NCBI GenBank assembly: GCA_950097015.1
Contig: CATNEN010000001.1
Location: 16,740,001-16,804,000, forward strand
Origin: Macrostomum hystrix
Lineage: Eukaryota > Animalia > Platyhelminthes
Direction: 5' to 3'
Length of the DNA: 64,000 bases
Of the stretch, positions 47,863 through 61,934 are shown in pieces. How positions within the stretch are numbered: position 1 is the first letter of the stretch; every line of letters begins with the position of its first letter. The notes beneath the pieces were generated by a model. It was given only the letters and a program-made list of their open reading frames with translations, did not search any database and was not told the DNA's origin. Both the position numbers and the translations under genes were made by a program.

Positions 47863-49175
47863 ATAAACCTATCAGTTTTTGCAATGCCGAGGTTACCACG
47901 GGCAACCAGGCGCAGCACATTCTACTACAATGGCAGCACCATTGGAATCAACGGCTAATCAGCGGCGACAGCCACACCAGCACCAGCATGAGATAGTCTA
48001 AAACCTGAGTGGGGACCGCCAGCTAGTCAAATATACTAGAAATGAGAATCTCGTTGTTTGTATTTTGTCACATACAAAAAATTTTTGTGCTTGTTTTTCC
48101 ACTCGCCTATTAACAGTTATCACTGGTCACTGAAAATAACTTTCTGCTAGAATAACATTGGAAGAATAGTTTTGTAACTTCGAAAGGCGGTGCATTGTGC
48201 AAAGCGTCTGATAATATTGTATCCATGAAAAAACATTTAATTCATTTAAACTTTTTAATAGCTTCGATAAAAAATACCAAAAATACTTTTTTCTTGCGAG
48301 CCCGTACAGGAAAATTTACAAGTTTACAAAGTTAAAATAAAAAGAACATATTTCACCTCTGCTACTTAAAACCGTACGTGTTGAAAGTGAGTAAAAACCG
48401 AGTCCTCTTTATCAGTACTGGAAGTAGTACATGAGGTAGCGTGGAATCTACAGTGCTCTTGTCATGCTTATGTAATTAATGTACGTTGCACGTTTCATTG
48501 TACGTGTGTGCAGAGTGTGTGATATAAAATCACAGCCACCCCGCCTCTAACAATAAACAAGAGCGCCCTGCCTTGGAGACGGAAATGTTGAGTCCTCACT
48601 ACATTGAGGAAGAAGACATTCTTACTGTCTTCCATTTGGAAAAAAGAGATTTGGGGAAATTGAGAATGGGAAAATTCCAGAAAAAACTGGTGGTTGTAAT
48701 AAGAAACAAAAGCATATCATGACTAATTTCATGTGGAGACATCTCTTTACGAGTGACACTAACTCAAACAAAAGGCTATGATGATACACAATAAAAGTAC
48801 ACTTCAGGCCACATACATTACAACAAAGAGCAACCACTAGGTTTCATAAAAATGATGAAATCGTCATTGACTAACAGCTATTTTTAGAGGTTTGTCAAAC
48901 TTATAGTAAACTGTTCAAACAAGAGTTGATATCAGAAAAAATCTAACGAAAGCTATAAAATTTCATGTTTGTTACGCTATCAGTCATTAGGGAGAAGCAG
49001 CAAACAAAGGTCATACGTTGAGCATTTAAAACAAATCTTAGAAATTACATTGTAAACACCACACAAGCAGTAAAGCCATTGAATTCTTCAACAAAAAATA
49101 CTGAAAATAAAAACTCATGCCTTTTTTAAAGCTCAGCTGCAAGTCACAGATGGCTTGATCAGTTTTTAACCTTGT

Positions 49176-52100
49176 CTAAATCCTACTGAAATCAGCTTGC
49201 CGAATGCGCTCCAGCTTTTCCGACACCCAGCAGATTTTTTCCTCATCCTGCGTCTCCACGGCAAATCGTCTCATGCTCGTGATTAAATCGATTTGCTGCT
49301 TGCAAAAAGAAAGCTGATAAAGTTGATTGCTGTAGTGAGCCAGGGTGAGCAGCTCCTCCAAGTCCGGGTCCTCTTGCAGCTCTGAGAGCCAGGCACCGAA
49401 GTCGATTGCTGTGCGATTGCGGAGCAGCTCAGCTTGCAGACTCCAGCTCAGGCAGCGGAAGTTCACGTACAGGTGTTCAGAGCGAGGCTTCGACAGTCTG
49501 GCCGTGAACAGAGTCTGCGTGAACTCTGGAAGAAACGGCAAGCTCGGCGGTGTGTCTGCGGGAAAGCAGAACCTCCACGCCCAGTCGGAGTCAACGGGAG
49601 CCTCCCAATCCATCGCTAGGCCTCTTAAGAACTGCTCCGGTTTCCATGCCCCTTGCGGCGCGTGAGCCATGAGGTCAGTCAGAACTACTTCAGCCTGTTG
49701 AACTTCATCGAACTTCCAGTGCACCATGGCTGTCAGGCAGGATACAGTGCACCTGCACCACTGCAGCTGATCGATGAGACTGAGCTGCCTCATCAGGTCG
49801 TCTCTGCTGCAGTCCTTTGACTGCAGGCCTTGCAAGCACTGATGTACCACGCAGTAAACGTCGCAAAGATGCATATATTGATCCTGGCGCCTTGATCGTA
49901 CTGCAGTAGCAGTGCTTAGTGGTGTCAGCGGCAGCAAGGTGAATGGGTGAAAGTAGAACTTTTCTGTCTGCAGAGGCTTCATGTGTCCTTTAATCTGCTC
50001 GATAAATTCGTCGATGTCGCACCTCAGCTCAAAGAGTCGCTCTCGAACCCTCGTCTTCGTATTGTCAAAGGAGCCGCCAAGACCAGCGTTCTTGAAGTAG
50101 AGCGGAGCGTCGGGCATGAAGAAGTGCGGCATGCACTCGTCGGGAGAGCTGTTTGGGTCGTCGATGAAGCTGAGCATCATGTCGAGAGACTCCTTGAGAC
50201 GTGCGATGAGGTTCTGCGGCTGCCAAGCCTCTCTCCATTCTTCCACGCCGTGTTTCTGCAGCATGAATAAGAGCAGCGTCTTTGCGTGGTAGGTCTTGAG
50301 TCCGGGAGTCTTTAGAGTGACTGGCAAATATCTCTTGAAGCAGAATTTGATGATCGTGAACAACTGGCCCTGAGTTTCGGATAGGTTGCGCATTACAACG
50401 AATTCATGGGCACTGAAGCTAATCCTGAACTCATTGAGCGATTGAGCACTTGTTGCCTGTACAAGATGAACATGGAGCAAATGATCATTGCTAATATTTA
50501 ATTTTTTTATTCTGCTGCCGAAGGTACTGCAGCACGGGATCGCAAAGCATAAGTCCTGCCTAGGCCGCACCCCGCACGCTTTTTCAGTCGCTGCTGGCTC
50601 GCTTCCTGCGGCAAGTGAATTTAAACTTTGAGTTTGACTTTGACATTGACTTGATGACTGCCTGCGTGGATCTTGATCTTTCGCTAGTCACACATTTTTT
50701 GGCGTATTGATGAAAAAGTAGAAGAGAAATGAAGAAGTCTAAACTAGTTTTAAGTCCCGTTACAAATAAAAGGTGAGCTTAGATAGCTATCCATCGCCAA
50801 ATGCCGTAATCAAGCTACATGGCTTGCTAGACGTAATGGCATTATTATAATCTAGAGACGGCCACTGATTATTTCCAATAGAACTTTCCAAGAAAAAATT
50901 AACGGTACTCGCACTTGCATCAGGATATCCCGCTGAAAACATGGATATCAGAACCTCAACTCACCTGATCCTACAGGCACCTGTGCGTGACCTTTTGTGA
51001 CGGCCACCTGGTTGGTAGTTGCGCACTCATGTCTTAACCTTTTGCAGCCGCCCTCCAGATGAAACTGTATGCCTCTAAGCAGCACCGTCCAGTCGATGTC
51101 CGAGTCAGCGCCTGTCCTTCCGTTCACCCGCACAAGACTGTTGGCCCAGCCCTCCGCGTAGCTGCCTGAAATCTGCCTGTCATCACGGCATAACACAATC
51201 CACATTCTCTGAAGGATGTCGGCCATCACCTGCTGACATTTGGCTCTCTGTCGGGTGAAGCCAGATTTTCTGAGCAGTTCACGCAGATCCATGCTGAGCA
51301 TTTTGTCGCGTGAGACGTCTTCAGTCCTGAAAATTTGTAGGATTTCATATAAGGTTTATTGCAATATTGGGCGAAAATGCATTCACACTAGTAGGAGTTC
51401 TAGGACTTGAGTTTGATGACCCCAAGTCTCGTTAATTTTTTTAGATCTTACCTTAAGCACTCTGAAAGTAGCATTAGCGACAGTTGCAAGTGTCCACGCT
51501 TCTTCGCTAGCTGTGCACACGTCCTACCGCTAGCGTCTCGATGACTAGCATACGATTTTCCCTGCAGCAGGCTCTTGGCTGCTTTAACATGCCCCGCTTC
51601 ACACGCTCGGCTCAGGGCTGTCTTACCCTTGCTGTCTTCAGCACTCACTGACGCACCCAGGTTTAGTAGTTTTTCTATGAGCTCCTCATAACCTGCGTCA
51701 GCAGCCAGCATGAGAGCGGTGGAACCGCTAGGACCGTAAGGAAGGTCAACGAAATCCTTGACGATTCGCTTGCTTTCGAGTATCGTGAAAGCCAGTGCGA
51801 GATGGCGGTGCGAAATCGAAAGATAAAGAAGCTTTGAGCACTGAACTGGCTCAATGCTTTCCAAAGTTTTGTTTAGAATAGAATTTCTAGAGTCGAGCGC
51901 CATCGTGAACAGGAATTTAATGAACTCTGGAAATTCAACTAGGTGTCTAAGTTCGATGTCACTTCGGTGAACGACTTCTTCATGTCCAAAAGATGCTCCT
52001 GCAATCGCACATTTTAACTTGCACTCCTTTTTCAATGCTTCATCCTCGATTAACATTAAAGATGAAGACATTAGTAGATCACTTCCTGACTGAGCTGCAG

Positions 52101-54051
52101 ATTCAGCGGCTGCGATGTGCAGCTCATCTTTCATTTTTGCATTATCCAGAGTCTCTGACAAATACGAAATGACTCTGCTGTGACCTCGTCGTGCAGCAGA
52201 TATTGCAGCTTTTAGACGACACTGCTGCTTCATTGACGGCTCAACTACAGCTTGAATAATATATTTTATCACTTTCGTATGGTTGTGCAATGCAGCAGTC
52301 TCAATAGTTGTTAGGCAGCATTGGCTATTTAGCTTTTCGTCAGATATTGTCGAAACAAGAAATTTCGTAAACTCAAGATATCGGTTTTGCTTGAAATGCT
52401 TAGCAGCTACTAAGCAGCACTGCTCCTTTTGCTGTTGACTGGAAGCTTCGTGAAGTAACAATGCTACAACCTGCACTTTTAGATTTTCTGCTGCGGATTC
52501 AACTGACCTCAGGAAGGCACGATCCTTTACAGAGATATCCACTATGTTTTTCAAAAAAATGAGTGTCTGCTCGCAGTCACCGTTCCATGCAGCTGACTCT
52601 GCAGCGCTAGCATTAAACTCATCCTTCATGCTCGCGTCCTGAACAAACTCAATGAGAAATTTCACAACTTCCCACGCGCTAGAAGCCGAAGCTGCCTTTG
52701 CAGCCGTCTTGCCACACTGATCCTTCATATTTTGATCTAGAATATTTCGTACTAGATCCTCGACTGCTTCTTTGTCGACATTCCTGGCTGCGGGTTCCGA
52801 AGCTTTTGCACAACAAGCGTACTTGATTCTGTCATCTAAAATAAAATCAGCGATGAACTTCATTGTAGTAATATGTCTATCGGCTGCAGCTGCTTCCGCT
52901 ACTGTTAAACAGCACTCATTTCTTGTTTCCAAATCATCTATTGATTGAATAGACGACTTTGCGAGGTCAAAGTAGCCACAGGAGGCGGCCACCTCAGCGA
53001 CTCTTTTGCAGCACGTGTGTTTAAACGTCTTGTCGAAACTGCATTCCTCCAGCAGAAAATGCACAACGTTTGGGCGACAAAATCTAGCCGCTGACTTCAC
53101 ACATATCATACAGAATTCGCGTCTGTTGCTTTCGTCAGTGACTTTTTTCAGAAAGCGCTTGACTTCCACGTCATAGCCCTTCATGCTAGCATACCTAGCT
53201 GCCATGATGCAGGTCGAATAACTGAACTCTTCATGCTCTACTGGCTCTGTAAGAGTGCGAAGTTTTCGCTGTTCAGCTTCCTTCAGTCCCATCTCATTTT
53301 CAAGGCACAGTTTTCTGCACTGCTCTCTCGCAATACTATCAGCTAAACTACGCTCGAGAAATTTGAAAACTTCATACAGACGTGTCTCCGAGGCGTCAGA
53401 CGGTAATGTGCTCTTCATAACAACAGATTTCAATGCTGGCCAGCAACTGCTGCTTTCCATACAGCACTTCTCACTGAAAAACTTGTCAGACACTTGTTCA
53501 ATCAGAAACTTCACCACTTTCCATTCCTTATGATTAGCGGCTAGCACTGCCAGTTCCATGCAGCATTCATTCTTGACAACACTATTCGTGACTGCATCGA
53601 TATACTTTTTTACTAATTTCCAATCGCGACAATGCGCAGCCGCTTTAGCCGTGGAAATACGCAAATCCTGAGCCAGATTTTCATCGCAAACGTTTTCTAG
53701 AAAAAATTGAAACATTTCCAATTGTACTTTCCTTTGCAATTCGTTTTTAGCCCCTTTGGCAGCCTGGACGCAGCATGAATCTCTGGAGCTTGGCTTTGAG
53801 CATAAATGCAGAATCACAAATTTCACGACATCCCAATTATGCCCACAGGAAGCCAGCTTTACAGCTTTGATGCAGCAGTTATCCCTTGCCGTTGATTCAT
53901 CACACCCCTGTACAATCCGTCTTAACTCTTCGAATTGATTTCTACTCACTGCTTCCTCGATTCTGGACTGACACTCCACACTAGGATAGTAGCATGGCTC
54001 TTCGTGATTTGTTTTTTCTTCAAAAGAATCACACCTAGCCTTATCGGACAT
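49176..54051 (-). CDS. Ankyrin-like solenoid plus Mab-21/cGAS-like nucleotidyltransferase (cGLR-like), copy A, ~1463 aa; exons 54051-51452, 51326-50965, 50605-49176
   Basis: GT-AG junctions in phases 2 and 1 give one frame. Canonical ankyrins (GSTALMLAADAGY, GKTALSRACEAGH). NTase motif ISGSYAEG...DSDID and third acid QDLCFAIPC. Mab-21 motifs VHLV, FRISFSAHE, LKTYHAKTLLL, WQPQNL and CMPHFFMP. Confidence 0.85.
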
Positions 54052-56065
54052 CGTCCACCTGACCCTTTATTGCGGTCCTCTTTGCTGCCTCGCAGATGTA
54101 TTTTTGTCTTGCGACTGGATCATTGGCTCCCATCACTTGCAGTCTTCATCACGCCTGAAGAACATTTGTTACGTTGGATGCATAAAGTTGTATTCTTATA
54201 CTTTGAAAAGCTTGAAAGGTTTAAAAGCTTGAGTAAGCATAACTAATTATTATTGCCCTTGGTAGTGGCTATTCGGTACCTACATGAAATTGATGCTATT
54301 CATACGCCAATTAAAAAAGGTATTTAACACACTGTGTAAAGCCAAGCTTTTATGAACCGATTTGAAAGCCTACATAGCTTTTTTTTATTTTTGAAAAAGC
54401 GATGTGGCATAATTTCATATGTTTGATTTTGCTATTTAAAATTGCATTTGCTATCGAAAATTGCTGTTTTGCCGTTTGTAACTGCATTTGCAATTGGATA
54501 TATTGCATAATATTGCATTAAAAATGCAATAAACTTCAAATAAACTTAAAATAAGTTTATAATAATTATAAGTTTAAAATAAAATAAACAAATAAACATT
54601 ATTATTGGGCATAGACTTAGATTGAGTTAATTTCGTCTACAGTTACGTCTATTATTTAAGCAGCATCTGGGTAATTCTCGCTTCATTGGCAGGTAAACTA
54701 CCGAATGAGGGGGGTTTACTGTCTGCCCCAGACAGGTCTAAGCCGGGGTACCCGTCCTGACGTTTTAAATATATAATTGTTCGCGCAGGCCTTTCAAGCC
54801 TTGCGTTCTTTTTCACCCTCTCAATTATTACTGCAACGTTTTTCATTTGACCACGCTGCCTCAGCACAACAATTCCCACCTCGTGAAGGACCACTACTTC
54901 GCGACAGCTTTTAAACCAAACATAAATTTTCTGCCCTTCTGATGTTTTGTGATTTTGGGAGTTGTTGCATCCCACATTTTTAGCTTGTGTTCTGAATTAT
55001 CAAAGCGACTGGTTGATAAATGTGCATGTTTGAAATACCCACGAGGTCTTTGTACTGTTACAAATGATGGCAAAAGCTGCTCTATTTTAAACCAGACTTT
55101 AAACCATTTCACAAAGTTGACGTTGTTTGTCCTCAACATTCAACAAAGCGTTTCGGGTGTCTTTTCTGTTGAAAATAAGGCTCTGCTGAATGCGTAAATG
55201 CGAGTTAAACTGACAAAAAGAATTGTGGCACAACAGAGAATATTTTTACTTACTTAATACTAAAGGTATCCATATAGCAAAAACGTGATTTTGAAGTAGA
55301 AGTGAACGCACTTTTTGTCTTCAGATTTTCAAAAAAGAGCGAAAAGTGAACCAGCTTCTCGAAATAAAGAGCTAATATATAAATTGCAGACAACGGATCT
55401 GCAATCTTAGGTACAACCCGCAAAGTTTTCTATCAAAGTACCTTTTTTCAGTGCTCTTGCTGCGCAAGTATAGTTTCGCGTACTTTGTAAAATCCAGAAG
55501 AAACTGACAAACACTGATATGACTATTTTAACCATTCTTCATGATGGAAGAAAAAGGGGGTTTCGCACACACATACAAACATAAAGCCAATGCGAATCTA
55601 AAGCCAGGATTTAAAATAACAATAGAAAGCAGCGACCAGACGTAAAGAAAAAAAGATGGAAAACCACGGAAAAAACGTGGAAAATCCGTGGTAAAGCCGC
55701 GAAAAGGTCGTGCTGAAAGACAAGATCTGCATTTTGCGTTATAAGTTGGCACTTTTACGCTCGTAAAACACATTTATTGAGCCATCTGCAGAAGCAATCG
55801 TGTAATTTTTATTTTCGCAAACAGAATACAATCCATATTTTACTCGTAAAATTTAGGCGTTTCTCAAATTTATCGCAGCATATCAAACTCCATCGCGCAA
55901 TATTTCTCATCTTTCGTCCCATCGTCACATCTTTCGTCTAATTACATCCTAAAAGTATTACAATGTGTATGCAATCCTACTACCACAGATACAAAAAATG
56001 TAAACTCATGTTTTTTTAAAGTTCAGCAGCAAGTCACAGATAGCTTGATCAGTTTTTTACTTTGT

Positions 56066-58641
56066 CTAAATCCTACTGAAATCAGCTTGCCGAATGCGCT
56101 CCAGCTTTTCCGACACCCAGCGGATTTTTTCCTCATCCTGCGTCTCCACGGCAAATCGTCTCATGCTCGTGATTAAATCGATTTGCTGCTTGCAAAAAGA
56201 AAGCTGATAAAGTTGATTGCTGTAGTGAGCCAGGGTGAGCAGCTCCTCCAAGTCCGGGTCCTCTTGCAGCTCTGAGAGCCAGGCATCGAAGTCGATTGCT
56301 GTGCGATTGCGGAGCAGCTCAGCTTGCAGACTCCAGCTCAGGCAGCGGAAGTTCACGTACAGGTGTTCAGAGCGAGGCTTCGACAGTCTGGCCGTGAACA
56401 GAGTCTGCGTGAACTCTGGAAGAAACGGCAAGCTCGGCGGTGTGTCTGCGGGAAAGCAGAACCTCCACGCCCAGTCGGAGTCAACGGGAGCCTCCCAATC
56501 CATCGCTAGGCCTCTTAAGAACTGCTCCGGTTTCCATGCCCCTTGCGGCGCGTGAGCCATGAGGTCAGTCAGAACTACTTCAGCCTGTTGAACTTCATCG
56601 AACTTCAAGTGCACCATGGCTGTCAGGCAGGATACAGTGCACCTGCACCACTGCAGCTGATCGATGAGACTGAGCTGCCTCATCAGGTCGTCTCTGCTCC
56701 AGTCCTTTGACTGCAGGCCTTGCAAGCACTGATGTACCACGCAGTAAACGTCGCAAAGATGCATATATTGATCCTGGCGCCTTGATCGTACTGCAGTAGC
56801 AGTGCTTAGTGGTGTCAGCGGCAGCAAGGTGAATGGGTGAAAGTAGAACTTTTCTGTCTGCAGAGGCTTCATGTGTCCTTTAATCTGCTCGATAAATTCG
56901 TCGATGTCGCACCTCAGCTCAAAGAGTCGCTCTCGAACCCTCGTCTTCGTATTGTCAAAGGAGCCGCCAAGACCAGCGTTCTTGAAGTAGAGCGGAGCGT
57001 CGGGCATGAAGAAGTGCGGCATGCACTCGTCGGGAGAGCTGTTTGGGTCGTCGATGAAGCTGAGCATCATGTCGAGAGACTCCTTGAGACGTGCGATGAG
57101 GTTCTGCGGCTGCCAAGCCTCTCTCCATTCTTCCACGCCGTGTTTCTGCAGCATGAATAAGAGCAGCGTCTTTGCGTGGTAGGTCTTGAGTCCGGGAGTC
57201 TTTAGAGTGACTGGCAAATATCTCTTGAAGCAGAATTTGATGATTGTGAACAACTGGCCCTGAATTTCGGATAGGTTGCGCATGGCAAACTTCTCGTGAA
57301 AGCTGAAGCTGACTCTCAGTTCATTTGGAAAGTCTGGCTGCGGCCTTGTCGCATTCACTAGATGAACTTGGAGGGGCAGATTGAGTTTTGAATTATAGAG
57401 TTTTTCGACACTGTTTCCCAATCCGCTGCAGCACTGGATGGCAATGCACAAGTCATGGGCCGGCCGTATACCGCATGCGGCTGCCGTATTTGCCGGCTGA
57501 CTTCCTGGAAATTAAATTGGTTGTTTTAGTTTCGAAAGCCGCGTCAATTTACTTAAATAATGCGCATAGTGCTCACTACAGTAACAGTAACAATAACCAA
57601 TAACAATTTCGCCATTCCACTGAACTGAGCAGAATGAGCGGATGTTTTGTGCCTAACAGACGTAACTCACCTGATCCCACAGGCACCTGTGCGTGACCTT
57701 TTTTGACGGCCACCTGGTTGGCAGTTGCGCACTCATGTCTTAACCTTTTGCAGCCGCCATCCAGATGAAGCTCTAAGCCTTCTAGCAGCACAGTACAGTC
57801 GATGTCCGAGTCAGCGCCTGTCCTTCCGTTCACCCGCACAAGACTGTTGGCCCAGCCCTCCGCGTAGCTGCCTGAAATCTGCCTGTCATCACGGCATAAC
57901 ACAATCCACATTCTCTGAAGGATGTCGGCCATCACCTGCTGACATTTGGCTCTCTGTAGGGTGAAGCCAGATTTTCTGAGCAGTTCACGCAGATCCATGC
58001 TGAGCATTTTGGCGCGTGAGACGTCTTCAGTCCTGTGTAAATTTTGTGTGCAAATTTAAAGAACAAAACTATATTATAATCTATAATAATATAGCTCGTA
58101 CTAAAATAAATATGAAGAAAACTTCATTCAAGTGTGACAGGCAAAAAGGTGCACGATGTAATCTTTCAAACCTTTTACTCGGTAAGAATTCACAGAGAAT
58201 TTCTCCCATCAGCGATAACATTGAACCTATTCAATCAAATGGTTGATGATCTGTCGTGGACTCAAGACCTACCACTCAAAGACACTGATCTTATTCATGC
58301 TGTAGAAACACGGCGGGGAAGAATGGGGAGAGGCTGCGCCCGACAGCACCTTAGCGTCGCTCTGCACTACCTGCTTGATCAGCCCGCGATGCAATTGACA
58401 AGTCCGAGCGTCACCTGCCGCGCTGCGGTCGCGCCACACCTCTGCAGGCACCTCAGGACCTACCAACACCAAGCAAAGATCGACCTGAAGATGCAACGAC
58501 ACCGAGGACACCGTGGCGCAGCTCTTCACCTGTCGCGTTCACCCCACCGACCGGCCCCATCGATCTCTAAGGCAACCCTTACAGCGTCGTGGGCCTCCTG
58601 CAAGCTGTCTTCCCTGGAGCCGGGACACCCATGATTGACTA

Positions 58642-58692
<51 letters not shown>

Positions 58693-61396
58693 AAAGCACA
58701 GTGAGACTTTGAACTCCCTGACAATTAGGAGGACAGAGCATATGTGTGAGTGTGTGATGGTCAGTGTAACGATAAAGTTTGGTAGAAGTGTATGTCATGC
58801 AGAAGTTACGCATTGCTTGTATAAAAATAGAACCGAGCTCTGACCTCAGACTGAGAGGATATAGAAGCAGCAGCAGTTGAGTGTGGCCGAATCTCTTCGC
58901 CAGCTGCGCGCACGTCAGAACTCTGTGGTCCCGATGGTTTGGATTGGCTCCTTTGTCTAGCAGCGTCTTGGCAGCTCGCATGTGGCCCGCTTCGCAAGCT
59001 CTCGTCAGAGCAGTCCGACCTTGATCGTCCACCGCACTCACCGACGCACCGACGTCCAACAATAGGTCAATGATCTCGTGATGACCCGCTTCGGCCGCGA
59101 GTATGAGGGCAGTGGCTCCATTTTCTACTTTAGCATCGACCAGCTCTCTATTGAATCTATGATTAATGATCAGTTTGAGAGCGAGTGCAACATCTCCAAG
59201 AGAGATGGTCAGACACAGCAGCTGCATGACCTGGATGTCCTGCAATGCATCCAGTAGATCGACAAGTATGGAGTTCTTATCCTTTAGTGCCATGGCAGAC
59301 AGAAATCGAACGAACTGTTGTGATTCGAAGACCCATTGTGGTTGGATTTTGCACAGCTGAACGACGTTTTCGTTACAAAGTGAAGCTCCAATGAGAGCGC
59401 AACTGCGTTGGCACTCATCTCTCCGAGCTTTGTCTGCTATGCAACCTAGGAATGCACTCATCGCCTCGACTCTTCCTGCTTCGGCTGACGCCCTCGCCGC
59501 TGATATTCGAAGCTTATCAGACATTACTGGGTCCACTTCACTCGCTAATAAATTGTTCACGACTTCGGGGTGACCACCTTGGGCTGAAAACTCAGCGGCC
59601 TTCAAGCGGCACTGTTGCCTCACTGATGGCTCGTCAACACGGTCAACAAGAAACTCCACCACTTTGGTGTGATTGTGCAATGCCGCTAGCTCTATGGCAC
59701 TGAGGCAGCATTGGTTCCGACTTTCTCTGTCACTTATAGCAGAAACAAGAAATTTAATAAAATCCAAATACTCATCATTGACAAAGTACTTTGCCACCCT
59801 TGAACTGCACCGGTCTTTTAAAGTTTCGTTAGACACCGCCATAACCAGAGATTTCACAACTTTGTCTTGTAAATTGCTGGCTGCGGATTCCACAGCACGA
59901 ATGTGAGCTTGATTTTTAACGTGCTCGTTAACAATGTTGTTTAGAAATTCCAGAGTCTCCTCTGAGTCGCCGCTCCACGCAGCAGACTCTGCGGCTGTTG
60001 CACAGCATTTATCCTTCAGCTTTTGGCTCCTGATACAATCCAACAGATACTTGACCACCGGCCAAGCCCGAGTATAAGAGGCTGACTTTGCTGCAGTCGT
60101 ACAGCACTCATCTTTCAGCATCTGATCCCGGATTCTCTGCACTAGAAATTCCACCACCTCTAGCCACTTGTTTCTCGCCGCAGGCTCGGTGAGGCTCGCA
60201 CAGCACTGCTCTCTCTGCTTTTCACAATGAATTGACTCCACAATGAATTCTATTGTTGCTTTGTGGCGGTGTACAGTGGAAAGCTTGGCTACAGTTAAGC
60301 AGCATTGGTCCCTAACCACTGCATCGTCTATTGTCTTGATGGCTAATTTAGTCAGATCAAAGTGTCCACAGCAGACAGCAATTTCTGCCACTTTCATGCA
60401 GCATGCATGCTTCAAACTTTCAACTGCGCTGCATCGCTGCAGCAACGACTTTACCACTTCTATTCTGGCGAATCTGGCCGACCATTCTGCACAGACCATG
60501 CAACCTTCGCGTCTTTTCTCTCCGCAAACTATTCGGTCTAGAAAAAAAATTACCTCATTTAAGTAGCCTTTGGCGCTAGCGAATTTCACTGCTTGGACAT
60601 ATGTGAGATCATCCGGCTTTTCAGCATTTAATATCTCTGATAAACGAGACTTTTCAGAGCCCTCCGCTTTTTCTAGTGCCTCAGACATGGAACTCAACCT
60701 TCTGCAGTCATCACGAACAATGCCGTGAGAAGCTTCCACCGCTAGGAACTTGAAAACTACAGTGAGTCGAGACCCAGCTTGTGTACTACTGTCGACCAGA
60801 TTTCTGAGCGATGCCACTTCATTCGAGAAGCCATTTGTTGAAGCAGCTTCAGATGCTTCAATGGAGCATAGATCTCTGACAGATGAGTCGGTGATTACTT
60901 CAATTATGATAAAAACGACTTTCCATTCTTTCGAACCGATTGCTAATCTAGCAACTTCTAGGCAACTCGAATCCTTGAAGTCTTGGTTCGATATTCGTTC
61001 TAATAAAGATGGCACGATTTCCCATTGGCGTCTCTCCGCAGCACACATTGCTAATTTGAGACGAAGCGAATCCTGACTAGTCTGGTCTGCAACTTGATGC
61101 AACAGAAAATTCACCGACTCAAACTGACCCTTTGAGGCCGCCTGTTTTGCTGCCTCGATGCAGCATTGGTCCCTGTCCTGTCGATCAGCGATACTCTGGA
61201 TCATAATTTCAGCAGCTTTTAACTGCCGTGCTTCAATGACAGCCGCTACATCATGAGCCAGCTGTACAGCGTCTTTGTTTGACTCGATGCCGCGCTGATC
61301 CTCAGTACCTAGCTCTACCTGACTCTGGATTAAAGTCTCATTTACTTCCACCTCCGCTGCAGCTGTACCTGGCTCTTGACCACTCTGATTAGTCAT
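56066..61396 (-). CDS. Ankyrin-like solenoid plus Mab-21/cGAS-like nucleotidyltransferase (cGLR-like), copy B, ~1450 aa; exons 61396-58845, 58032-57671, 57504-56066
   Basis: Same exon structure and phases as copy A (exon 2 is 362 nt in both). Ankyrins GATALILAAEAGH and GRTALTRACEAGH. Motifs ISGSYAEG...DSDID, HDLCIAIQC, LRVSFSFHE and LKTYHAKT. Confidence 0.85.
58300..58692 (+). mobile_element. Degenerate 3' fragment of a non-LTR retrotransposon ending in a (CA)n tract, in copy B intron 1
   Basis: A frameshifted translation RCNDTEDTVAQLFTCRVHPTD...PIDL*GNPY resembles the C-terminal Cys/His knuckle of LINE ORF2. A (CA)n tract follows directly at 58653-58692. Confidence 0.5.
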
Positions 61397-61934
61397 TCCA
61401 CTCAGTGACTTAGGCAGGCAAAATCTTAAACTTCGGACTCACCAAATAGCTGGGGTGCTGGGGTCAATTTTTTTTCAGGATCTTAGATATAAATTTTTGT
61501 TCAGTACTTTCTGTCTGGCCACGTATAAGATTTTTTTCTTTAATACTAGAATTTGCTTGACTATTATCGCTGGAGTTTCGCTAATGTAGATAAACGAGAT
61601 TGAACTGTAATTTGAGGCAAATTTCAACAATAAAATTGGACTAGTCTTTATATTTGTGATAAGAAAGTTCATTTTCAAAGTTCAAAGTTCACTTTCAATA
61701 TCCAACTCTGCATGAAGGTTCTAAATTATCTAGGTAATGAGGTAATTAATATTTATATGAACTCAAATGAATCATAAAAAATATCAATAAACTTATAGAG
61801 GGCAACACAAGCTCGATGAGCACTCGATGAGCGTTTCTTTCCTGGCTGCTCCGAACTGCCAACAGCACAAGCAACGCTAATTTTATCTCTTAGGCGGGGG
61901 TGAATCTTATCTATGACGCAAAGTTTAACAAAAT

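Follow-up and report, generated by a model that had tools for sequence, protein, structure and literature searches.

In cGAS, Drosophila cGLR1, Cv-cGLR1 and Sp-cGLR1, nucleic acid is sensed by the nucleotidyltransferase (NTase) domain. We know of no activating ligand for most animal cGAS-like receptors (cGLRs). In RNase L, ankyrin repeats gate the effector. Here we describe two neighbouring genes, A and B, whose products each place a long ankyrin-type solenoid and a cGAS-like NTase in one polypeptide. They lie in a stretch of 64,000 nucleotides (nt) of the flatworm Macrostomum hystrix (contig CATNEN010000001.1, positions 16,740,001 to 16,804,000; hereafter the window), a member of a genus with tools for RNA interference and transgenesis. 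A and B are expressed, tandemly duplicated members of a very large Macrostomum-specific cGLR family.

Fusions of this kind have been catalogued. According to Li et al. 2023 (PMC9980059), single-domain proteins make up 87% of cGLRs, and some cGLRs are fused to tetratricopeptide repeat (TPR) or ankyrin (ANK) modules, ANK-cGLR fusions being a named category; bivalves reach more than 200 cGLRs, and species with cGLR radiations have 3–10 STING genes. Table S2 of the same paper contains Macrostomum lignano proteins with Ank_2, including the subfamily of the window genes, and five M. lignano enzymes were cloned for its 140-enzyme screen (Table S3). PAA93208.1 and PAA68676.1 (cloned nos. 92 and 93) are clear members of the subfamily of the window genes, and their constructs lacked the repeats. 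The authors of the preliminary description of this locus knew of no characterised flatworm protein with such an architecture. A claim of novelty is not supported, since ANK-cGLR fusions, those of M. lignano included, were already catalogued (Li et al. 2023, PMC9980059) and a 1,374-amino-acid (aa) M. lignano protein is public. A and B are new members of the ANK-cGLR class and constitute no new kind of system. What is new here is the family census, a STING-like family, the mosaic divergence of A and B, an upstream exon (exon 0) of gene A, and candidate isoforms that lack the solenoid.

The M. lignano ANK-cGLRs (P0016, PAA93208.1, PAA68676.1) share with A and B a series of ankyrin-like repeats with a conserved Cys pair (CC-type repeats), three canonical ankyrins, an NTase of the GSYAEG...SDID...D pattern, a Mab-21_C domain, a helical tail and the residues at the exon junctions. 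Compared with the window genes, they are 39% identical in the repeat exon and about 61% identical in exon 3. They come from another species and are paralogues rather than clear orthologues. Homogenisation of the enzyme half and candidate repeat-skipping isoforms are features of the window pair that are undescribed for M. lignano. The characterised enzymes Cv-cGLR1 (8gjw), Sp-cGLR1 (8gjy), a Tribolium cGLR (7lt2) and cGAS (7bum, 4k9b) have the same bilobed fold (Z 16.5–18.2 with a homologue model) and the same G-S, D-x-D, D site. However, identity to these animal cGLRs and cGAS is 15–20%; they are single-domain or carry short extensions and are activated by double-stranded (ds) DNA or dsRNA on the NTase surface, whereas the window genes have a solenoid of about 850 aa before the NTase and a tail of about 260 aa after it.

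Corals and molluscs also have ANK- and TPR-cGLRs (Li et al. 2023, PMC9980059, Fig. 1C, Fig. 4C, Table S2), which combine a cGLR core with a helical-repeat protein-interaction module; their genomes show an extreme radiation of cGLRs as well as several STING genes. The flatworm fusions may have arisen independently of these; their repeats, unlike those of the coral and mollusc fusions, are a distinctive Cys-pair variant of the ankyrin repeat, in exons with open frames of up to 1,600–1,800 aa. A variable solenoid combined with a conserved signalling module is also the logic of RNase L and of the NLR/STAND receptors (leucine-rich repeats; ANK, TPR and WD40 in fungal NLRs and bacterial Avs), which likewise form large, tandemly arrayed, fast-diversifying families. 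These likenesses are analogies only. The output of A and B would be a diffusible nucleotide and not oligomerisation-driven signalling, and no NACHT or NB-ARC domain was found by Pfam, at E values up to 1, in the six exon products of the pair.

Gene structure and transcripts of the pair

Gene A spans 49176–54154 and gene B 56066–61396, both on the minus strand. By splice-site reading, six minus-strand open reading frames (ORFs) join into two genes with predicted products of about 1,463 aa (gene A) and 1,450 aa (gene B). All sites are canonical GT..AG, the intron phases are 2 and then 1 in both genes, and exon 2 is 362 nt long in each. The preliminary description had located the same ORFs and joined them with identical phases into two 3-exon genes; the three coding exons of each gene stand as described, while gene A has in addition a fourth, upstream 5′ exon ending at 55254. 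The features of the two genes, all on the minus strand, are as follows.

Gene A, exon 0, 55254–55282, minus strand: 3′ end of an upstream non-coding 5′ exon; donor gtaagt at 55253; a 29-nt contig loose end maps here.
Gene A, exon 1, 51452–54154, minus strand: repeat solenoid and canonical ankyrins; acceptor ttcttcag/g at 54154; ATG at 54051; coding sequence 54051–51452, 866 aa; phase-2 donor TTAAG/GTAAGA after 51452.
Gene A, degenerate repeats, 52084–53892, minus strand: about 17 CC-type ankyrin-like units of 33 aa (aa ~54–656), from autocorrelation, a repeat hidden Markov model (HMM) and Pfam Ank_2.
Gene A, canonical ankyrins, 51472–51834, minus strand: three repeats (aa ~740–860) matching Pfam Ank, Ank_2, Ank_3, Ank_4 and Ank_5; best stretches aa 763–831.
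Gene A, exon 2, 50965–51326, minus strand: NTase N-lobe core; G-S at 51166–51161, D-I-D at 51100–51092; acceptor TTTTCAG/GACTGAAG, donor GGATCAG/GTGAGT; in-frame ATG at 51301; junctions backed by contigs.
Gene A, exon 3, 49176–50605, minus strand: acceptor CCGCAG/GAAGCG at 50605; third catalytic Asp at 50555–50553; stop at 49176–49178.
Gene A, domains of exon 3, minus strand: Mab-21_C at about 50100–50333 and a helical tail of about 260 aa at 49179–49961, limits transferred from the homologue model.
Gene B, upstream 5′ segment, 61443–61470, minus strand: alternative donor g/gtgagt after 61443, 45 nt 5′ of the ATG; 28-nt loose end of an X4 contig.
Gene B, exon 1 coding sequence, 58845–61396, minus strand: 850 aa; solenoid and three canonical ankyrins; phase-2 donor ctgag/gtcaga.
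Gene B, exon 2, 57671–58032, minus strand: NTase core; G-S at 57872–57867, D-I-D at 57806–57798.
Gene B, exon 3, 56066–57504, minus strand: third Asp at 57454–57452; Mab-21_C; tail.

Four public sequencing runs from one 2020 study contain about 80% of the window's words, and their contigs were aligned to positions 48700–54500. The joint 50605/50965, which skips 359 nt, was present in all four runs, and the joint 51326/51452, which skips 125 nt, in three of them. Both read CT..AC on the plus strand, that is GT..AG on the gene strand. The joints coincide exactly with the predicted junctions, so that the contigs derive from RNA; contig depth over intron 2 of gene A is zero. The joints place the ankyrin and NTase parts in one transcript and not in separate genes. 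A loose end at 51328 in runs X2 and X3 is the reverse complement of the end of gene B exon 1, joined to exon 2, and a 570-nt 'replaced' joint (50393/50964) has the pattern of a gene B transcript aligned to gene A. Gene B is thus likewise expressed, with the same continuity from exon 1 to 2 and from exon 2 to 3.

The contigs of all four runs stop at acceptor 54154 with 29 nt of foreign sequence, whose single genome copy lies at 55254–55282 on the minus strand and is followed by GTAAGT. Because this sequence is unique and has its own donor, gene A possesses an upstream 5′ exon and exon 1 begins at acceptor 54154. A trans-spliced leader joined to acceptors 54154 and 51326 was considered for the 29 nt and ruled out, the sequence being unique in the genome, located 1.1 kb upstream and equipped with its own gtaagt donor, as befits a cis 5′ exon. 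In one X5 contig, exon 0 of gene A is joined straight to exon 2, with the repeat exon skipped; this join is in frame from an ATG in exon 0 (MDTFSIK/TEDV...). One X4 contig similarly joins the upstream segment of gene B (donor after 61443) straight to exon 2. These contigs suggest isoforms without the repeat exon for both genes.

The leader of gene A within exon 1 (54052–54154, minus strand) is 103 nt long and holds three upstream ATGs. A 30-codon upstream ORF in it (MGANDPVARQKYICEAAKRTAIKGQVDDVR, then a stop) resembles a CC-type repeat read in another frame, and may be the trace of an older N-terminus lost through a frameshift. Intron 1 of gene B contains a (GT)n microsatellite at about 58650–58700, which is why the mechanical exon 1 ORF of this gene overruns its donor site. 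The other genes of the window encode an MFS transporter, an S28 peptidase and a DUF4518 protein.

Repeat solenoid and nucleotidyltransferase

The first part of each product had been described as about 750 aa of degenerate 33-aa repeats followed by about three canonical ankyrins, and this is borne out by three approaches. BLOSUM autocorrelation over the first ~750 aa gave peaks at offsets 33, 66 and 99 in both genes (z 14–15 against shuffled sequences; 14.2 for gene A). The repeat HMM found about 16–18 units with a conserved Cys pair, then three canonical ankyrins, in each gene; the consensus of the CC-type repeat in gene A is x3[RK]DxCCxxAAxxAAxxGxxxVVKFLxxxVxD. Pfam Ank_2 matched the two exon-1 products with E values of 4.6e-29 and 1.6e-33 in 5–6 stretches (six in gene A). 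At the level of sequence, A and B thus have the ankyrin-profile repeats and 33-residue period of ankyrin-repeat proteins, with only the last three repeats being canonical. The open frames of paralogous repeat exons in this genome range from about 300 to 1,810 aa. Two such exons, at C1:13854374-13859767 and C1:11413975-11418354, are open for 1,810 and 1,607 aa, roughly double the length of the window solenoids.

The second part is a cGAS-like NTase. GSYAEG and SDID are encoded by exon 2, and the third Asp (QDLC or HDLC) together with the Mab-21 motifs by exon 3. Of the motifs named in the preliminary description, GSYAEG, SDID, QDLC, R[IV]SFS, KTYHAKT and MPHFF are all present, and most are near-invariant across the family. 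Pfam Mab-21_C was detected in both exon-3 products (27.4 and 29.6 bits against a curated cut-off of 24.1). The catalytic G-S, D-x-D and third Asp of cGLR active sites are intact in both genes, and neither A nor B has the degenerate active site typical of non-catalytic Mab-21 proteins (MAB21L1/2, MiD49/51). In a 72-sequence alignment of the family with distant Mab-21 proteins, the corresponding residues G65, S66, D87, D89 and D148 are kept in 61–64 of about 65 aligned sequences.

The fold was modelled with AlphaFold2 (AF2) on the contiguous M. lignano homologue P0002, 61% identical, using this alignment. The model is of high quality (predicted local distance difference test, pLDDT, 88.7; predicted template-modelling score 0.88) and comprises an NTase at residues ~15–340 and a mainly helical tail at residues 356–640. 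G-S follows the strand 60–64, D-x-D stands at the start of the strand 87–93, and the third Asp lies in the strand 146–155. The best 50 PDB matches found by Foldseek are all cGAS (probability 1.0, target template-modelling score, TM, 0.5–0.58). With VIA-align, run against 48,161 representative chains, the Z score was 18.2 for Cv-cGLR1, 17.3 for mouse cGAS, 16.7 for Sp-cGLR1, 16.5 for the Tribolium cGLR, 16.1 for MB21D2, 14.5 for MiD49 and MAB21L1, 11–13.7 for bacterial CD-NTases and 11.2 for OAS1. The fold check proposed in the preliminary description, run on this homologue, thus returned the cGAS/cGLR fold and not an unrelated one. Together with Mab-21_C in both genes it points to the bilobed Mab-21/cGAS fold, whereas phmmer of exon 3 against PDB sequences gave nothing meaningful. 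That one polypeptide unites an ankyrin-type solenoid and a cGAS-like NTase is accordingly upheld by the splice evidence, Pfam, the catalytic residues and the homologue fold match.

The C-terminal tail of about 260 aa is helical and acidic. It gave no clear match in structure or atlas comparisons, the nearest being a weak TPR-like one (3k9i, Z 8.5) and atlas scores of 0.83–0.84 to mollusc Mab-21_C clusters.

The Macrostomum family, the A/B mosaic and STING-like loci

A genome-wide paralogue count and a search for STING had been proposed in the preliminary description. The count gave at least 142 NTase-core exons, 126 of them with intact motifs, and the search at least 11 divergent STING-like loci. 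The genome searched comprises 220,453,370 bases in 42 contigs. In it, at least 92 places match exon 3, mostly without stops, and at least 149 match exon 2. Among 142 NTase-core exons (140 retrieved plus the window pair), G-[ST]...[DE]-x-[DE] is changed in 16, and many of the paralogues are adjoined by a repeat exon. One separate canonical Mab-21 gene lies elsewhere in the genome (C24). In the NTase-core exons L069, L105, L108 and L116 (C3:11.17–11.72 Mb; C38:3.64–3.69 Mb), G-S is replaced by [RQ]-V and D-x-D by A-x-Q; judged from these residues, the subgroup probably represents non-catalytic family members. In the paralogue L002:2333-5878 (minus strand; C2:3.317–3.321 Mb), exon 3 does not end with the tail but continues as a long series of 11-aa units (NHPSKLRASSV and variants). 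A 1,192-aa open frame at C2:3.32 Mb was considered as a candidate intron-free ANK and NTase paralogue and rejected, as it is exon 3 extended by 11-aa repeats.

Outside this genome, a search with exon 3 returned only M. lignano proteins, at about 61% identity, several of them contiguous models of ankyrins, NTase, Mab-21_C and tail. The M. lignano gene models P0001 and P0003 carry the same junction residues as the splice joins of A and B. Exon 1 matched the full-length, 1,374-aa P0016 (BOX15_Mlig013042g1), which has the whole architecture, at 39% identity over 96% of the exon. A HMMER scan with P0002 gave 180 matches; the ones sampled to an E value of about 1e-18 come from M. lignano paralogues, and many of these have ankyrin regions and a length of 1,100–1,400 aa. 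The weaker ENA matches examined all carry Pfam Mab-21_C, most of them Mab-21 and some TPR, and the non-flatworm relatives carry Mab-21 and Mab-21_C. P0014, a 'kinase' with the same tail, was set aside as an apparent chimeric fragment model.

These data bear on the possibility that A and B are non-enzymatic adaptors of the MiD49/51 or MAB21L1 type, in which the NTase fold would serve for binding and the ankyrins for protein interactions. MiD49 and MAB21L1 are indeed good structural matches of the homologue model, 16 of the 142 paralogous cores have lost the motifs, and no activity is reported for the M. lignano clones. However, the persistence of G-S, D-x-D and the third Asp in both window genes, and of intact motifs in 126 of the 142 cores, is hard to explain without selection for catalysis, and the closest structural matches are active cGLRs rather than MiD or MAB21L1. 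We regard an adaptor role as very improbable.

Comparison of A with B reveals a mosaic. Their first exons are 58% identical in nucleotides and 44% in amino acids, and are still each other's closest relatives. Exon 2 is 96% identical in nucleotides. In exon 3, identity is about 62% over the first ~230 nt and rises to 99.7%, with four differences, over the last ~1,190 nt. The introns and flanks are unalike. These sequences are most simply read as the outcome of an old duplication, after which the parts encoding the enzyme and the tail recently underwent gene conversion.

For STING, a search with Pfam STING_LBD (ligand-binding domain, LBD) gave one sub-threshold match in the genome (25.6 bits against a cut-off of 27). 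The ORF with this match proved to have at least 11 paralogues, and these divergent STING-LBD-like loci are located as follows.

C2:8.97–9.10 Mb: cluster of STING-like loci (L001, L005–L010, L012).
C7, C38 and C39: further STING-like loci (L011, L013–L017).

STING_LBD is the sole Pfam match, at 20–24 bits, in 6 of the 10 paralogues scanned, and scores about 13 bits in 2 more. When a profile of the family was compared with the PDB, all 60 matches listed were STING chains (best E 2.5e-4), and the alignment covers the motif of the α1 helix (FAWNF..FLRLILPNLE against LAWSYY..YLRLILP). An AF2 model of a STING-like protein (mean pLDDT 70, about 80 in the LBD) matches only STING structures (TM 0.63–0.67), among them those of C. 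gigas (8ydn, E 3.9e-8) and Nematostella (5cfp, TM 0.67). phmmer against the PDB and the protein atlas returned nothing for the STING-like candidate, which was recognised only through two profiles (Pfam and paralogue) and by the fold search. In the model, a C-terminal α/β domain of about 130 aa follows the LBD; L017:685-2346:+ has instead an N-terminal extension of about 160 aa. With these loci, a putative nucleotide receptor is present in the same genome as the cGLRs, and a cGLR-STING axis in this worm is plausible from sequence profiles and the predicted structure.

A and B could also be active enzymes that catalyze some other nucleotidyl transfer (OAS-like synthesis of linear oligonucleotides, RNA tailing or protein nucleotidylation), for which STING would not be the receptor. 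The folds of OAS and terminal uridylyltransferases (TUTases) were also matched (Z 10–11), and the STING-like proteins are highly divergent, with Pfam scores under the threshold. However, the cGLR and cGAS matches lie 5–7 Z units above those of OAS and TUTases, the non-flatworm sequence relatives are Mab-21 family proteins, and a co-expanded STING-like family is present. We therefore give such alternative chemistry only a very slim chance, slightly below that of an adaptor.

Possible sensing and signalling by ANK-cGLRs

We consider it rather likely that A and B encode enzymes that synthesise a nucleotide second messenger, that the solenoid determines their activity or specificity, and that STING-like receptors act downstream. 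Once activated, the enzyme would make a cyclic or linear nucleotide second messenger. The solenoid would act as a variable module that recognises the trigger, or would hold the enzyme off until a trigger is bound, and the STING-like proteins would read the enzyme product. Gene conversion would keep the enzyme halves of A and B near-identical while the solenoid exons stay far apart. From the homogenised enzyme and the diverged solenoid we propose that A and B are two receptors with one output and different inputs. The solenoid-skipping isoform may supply repeat-free enzyme. A sensor that gates a synthase plausibly fits three observations drawn from the sequences, namely the divergence of the repeat halves of A and B, the length variation of the repeat exons and the STING-like family.

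Several points weigh against a solenoid-gated synthase. The STING-like genes score 20–25 bits, less than the Pfam cut-off of 27, and a word-based search of databases found no homologues. Each solenoid-skipping isoform is supported by one contig from one run. The fold evidence comes from the 61%-identical homologue P0002 and not from the window NTase as a joined chain. Li et al. 2023 (PMC9980059) name 15 active enzymes, none of them an M. lignano clone; their main text mentions no such clone, and they report no activity or ligand for any of the five. Finally, the NTase pieces are mildly basic (pI 8.2–9.1), so that direct nucleic-acid sensing by the enzyme domain is possible.

The last point belongs to an alternative in which nucleic acid is sensed by the NTase itself and the solenoid has a scaffolding role, in which it would localise or oligomerise the protein, recruit partners or autoinhibit the enzyme. 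In favour of this, the cGLRs that rank highest in the structural comparison respond to dsDNA or dsRNA. Moreover, the enzyme may work without the solenoid, since the contigs suggest repeat-free isoforms and repeat-free M. lignano gene models exist (P0002, P0061). However, the solenoid half is the most diverged part of A and B while the enzyme half is homogenised, and repeat number varies widely among paralogues, as expected of a specificity module rather than of a common scaffold. Neither a Zn-thumb nor a nucleic-acid-binding insertion of any other known kind was identified in the NTase. Nucleic-acid sensing by the NTase thus appears unlikely, though clearly more probable than an adaptor role or another chemistry.

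Within the solenoid-gated reading, a more specific scheme can be put forward tentatively, and we hold it to be doubtful. The Cys-pair solenoid would sense ligands other than nucleic acid, for example a pathogen protein, and would allosterically release the cGLR. Gene conversion would keep a common enzyme and output, splicing would add a sensor-free isoform, and the products would feed the co-expanded STING-like receptors with their C-terminal α/β domain.

The A/B pair amounts to a natural experiment, in which near-identical enzyme halves are joined to very different repeat arrays, so that the specificity of the solenoid is directly testable. The role of the repeat domains carried by a minority of cGLRs is the question that this pair addresses. 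At least 126 NTase-core exons with intact motifs, together with the divergent STING-like genes, give this genus of free-living flatworms one of the larger radiations of cGLRs. Should the more specific scheme above prove true, cGLR-STING chemistry would underlie an NLR-like recognition repertoire in Macrostomum, a genus of a phylum in which that chemistry is thought to be mostly absent.

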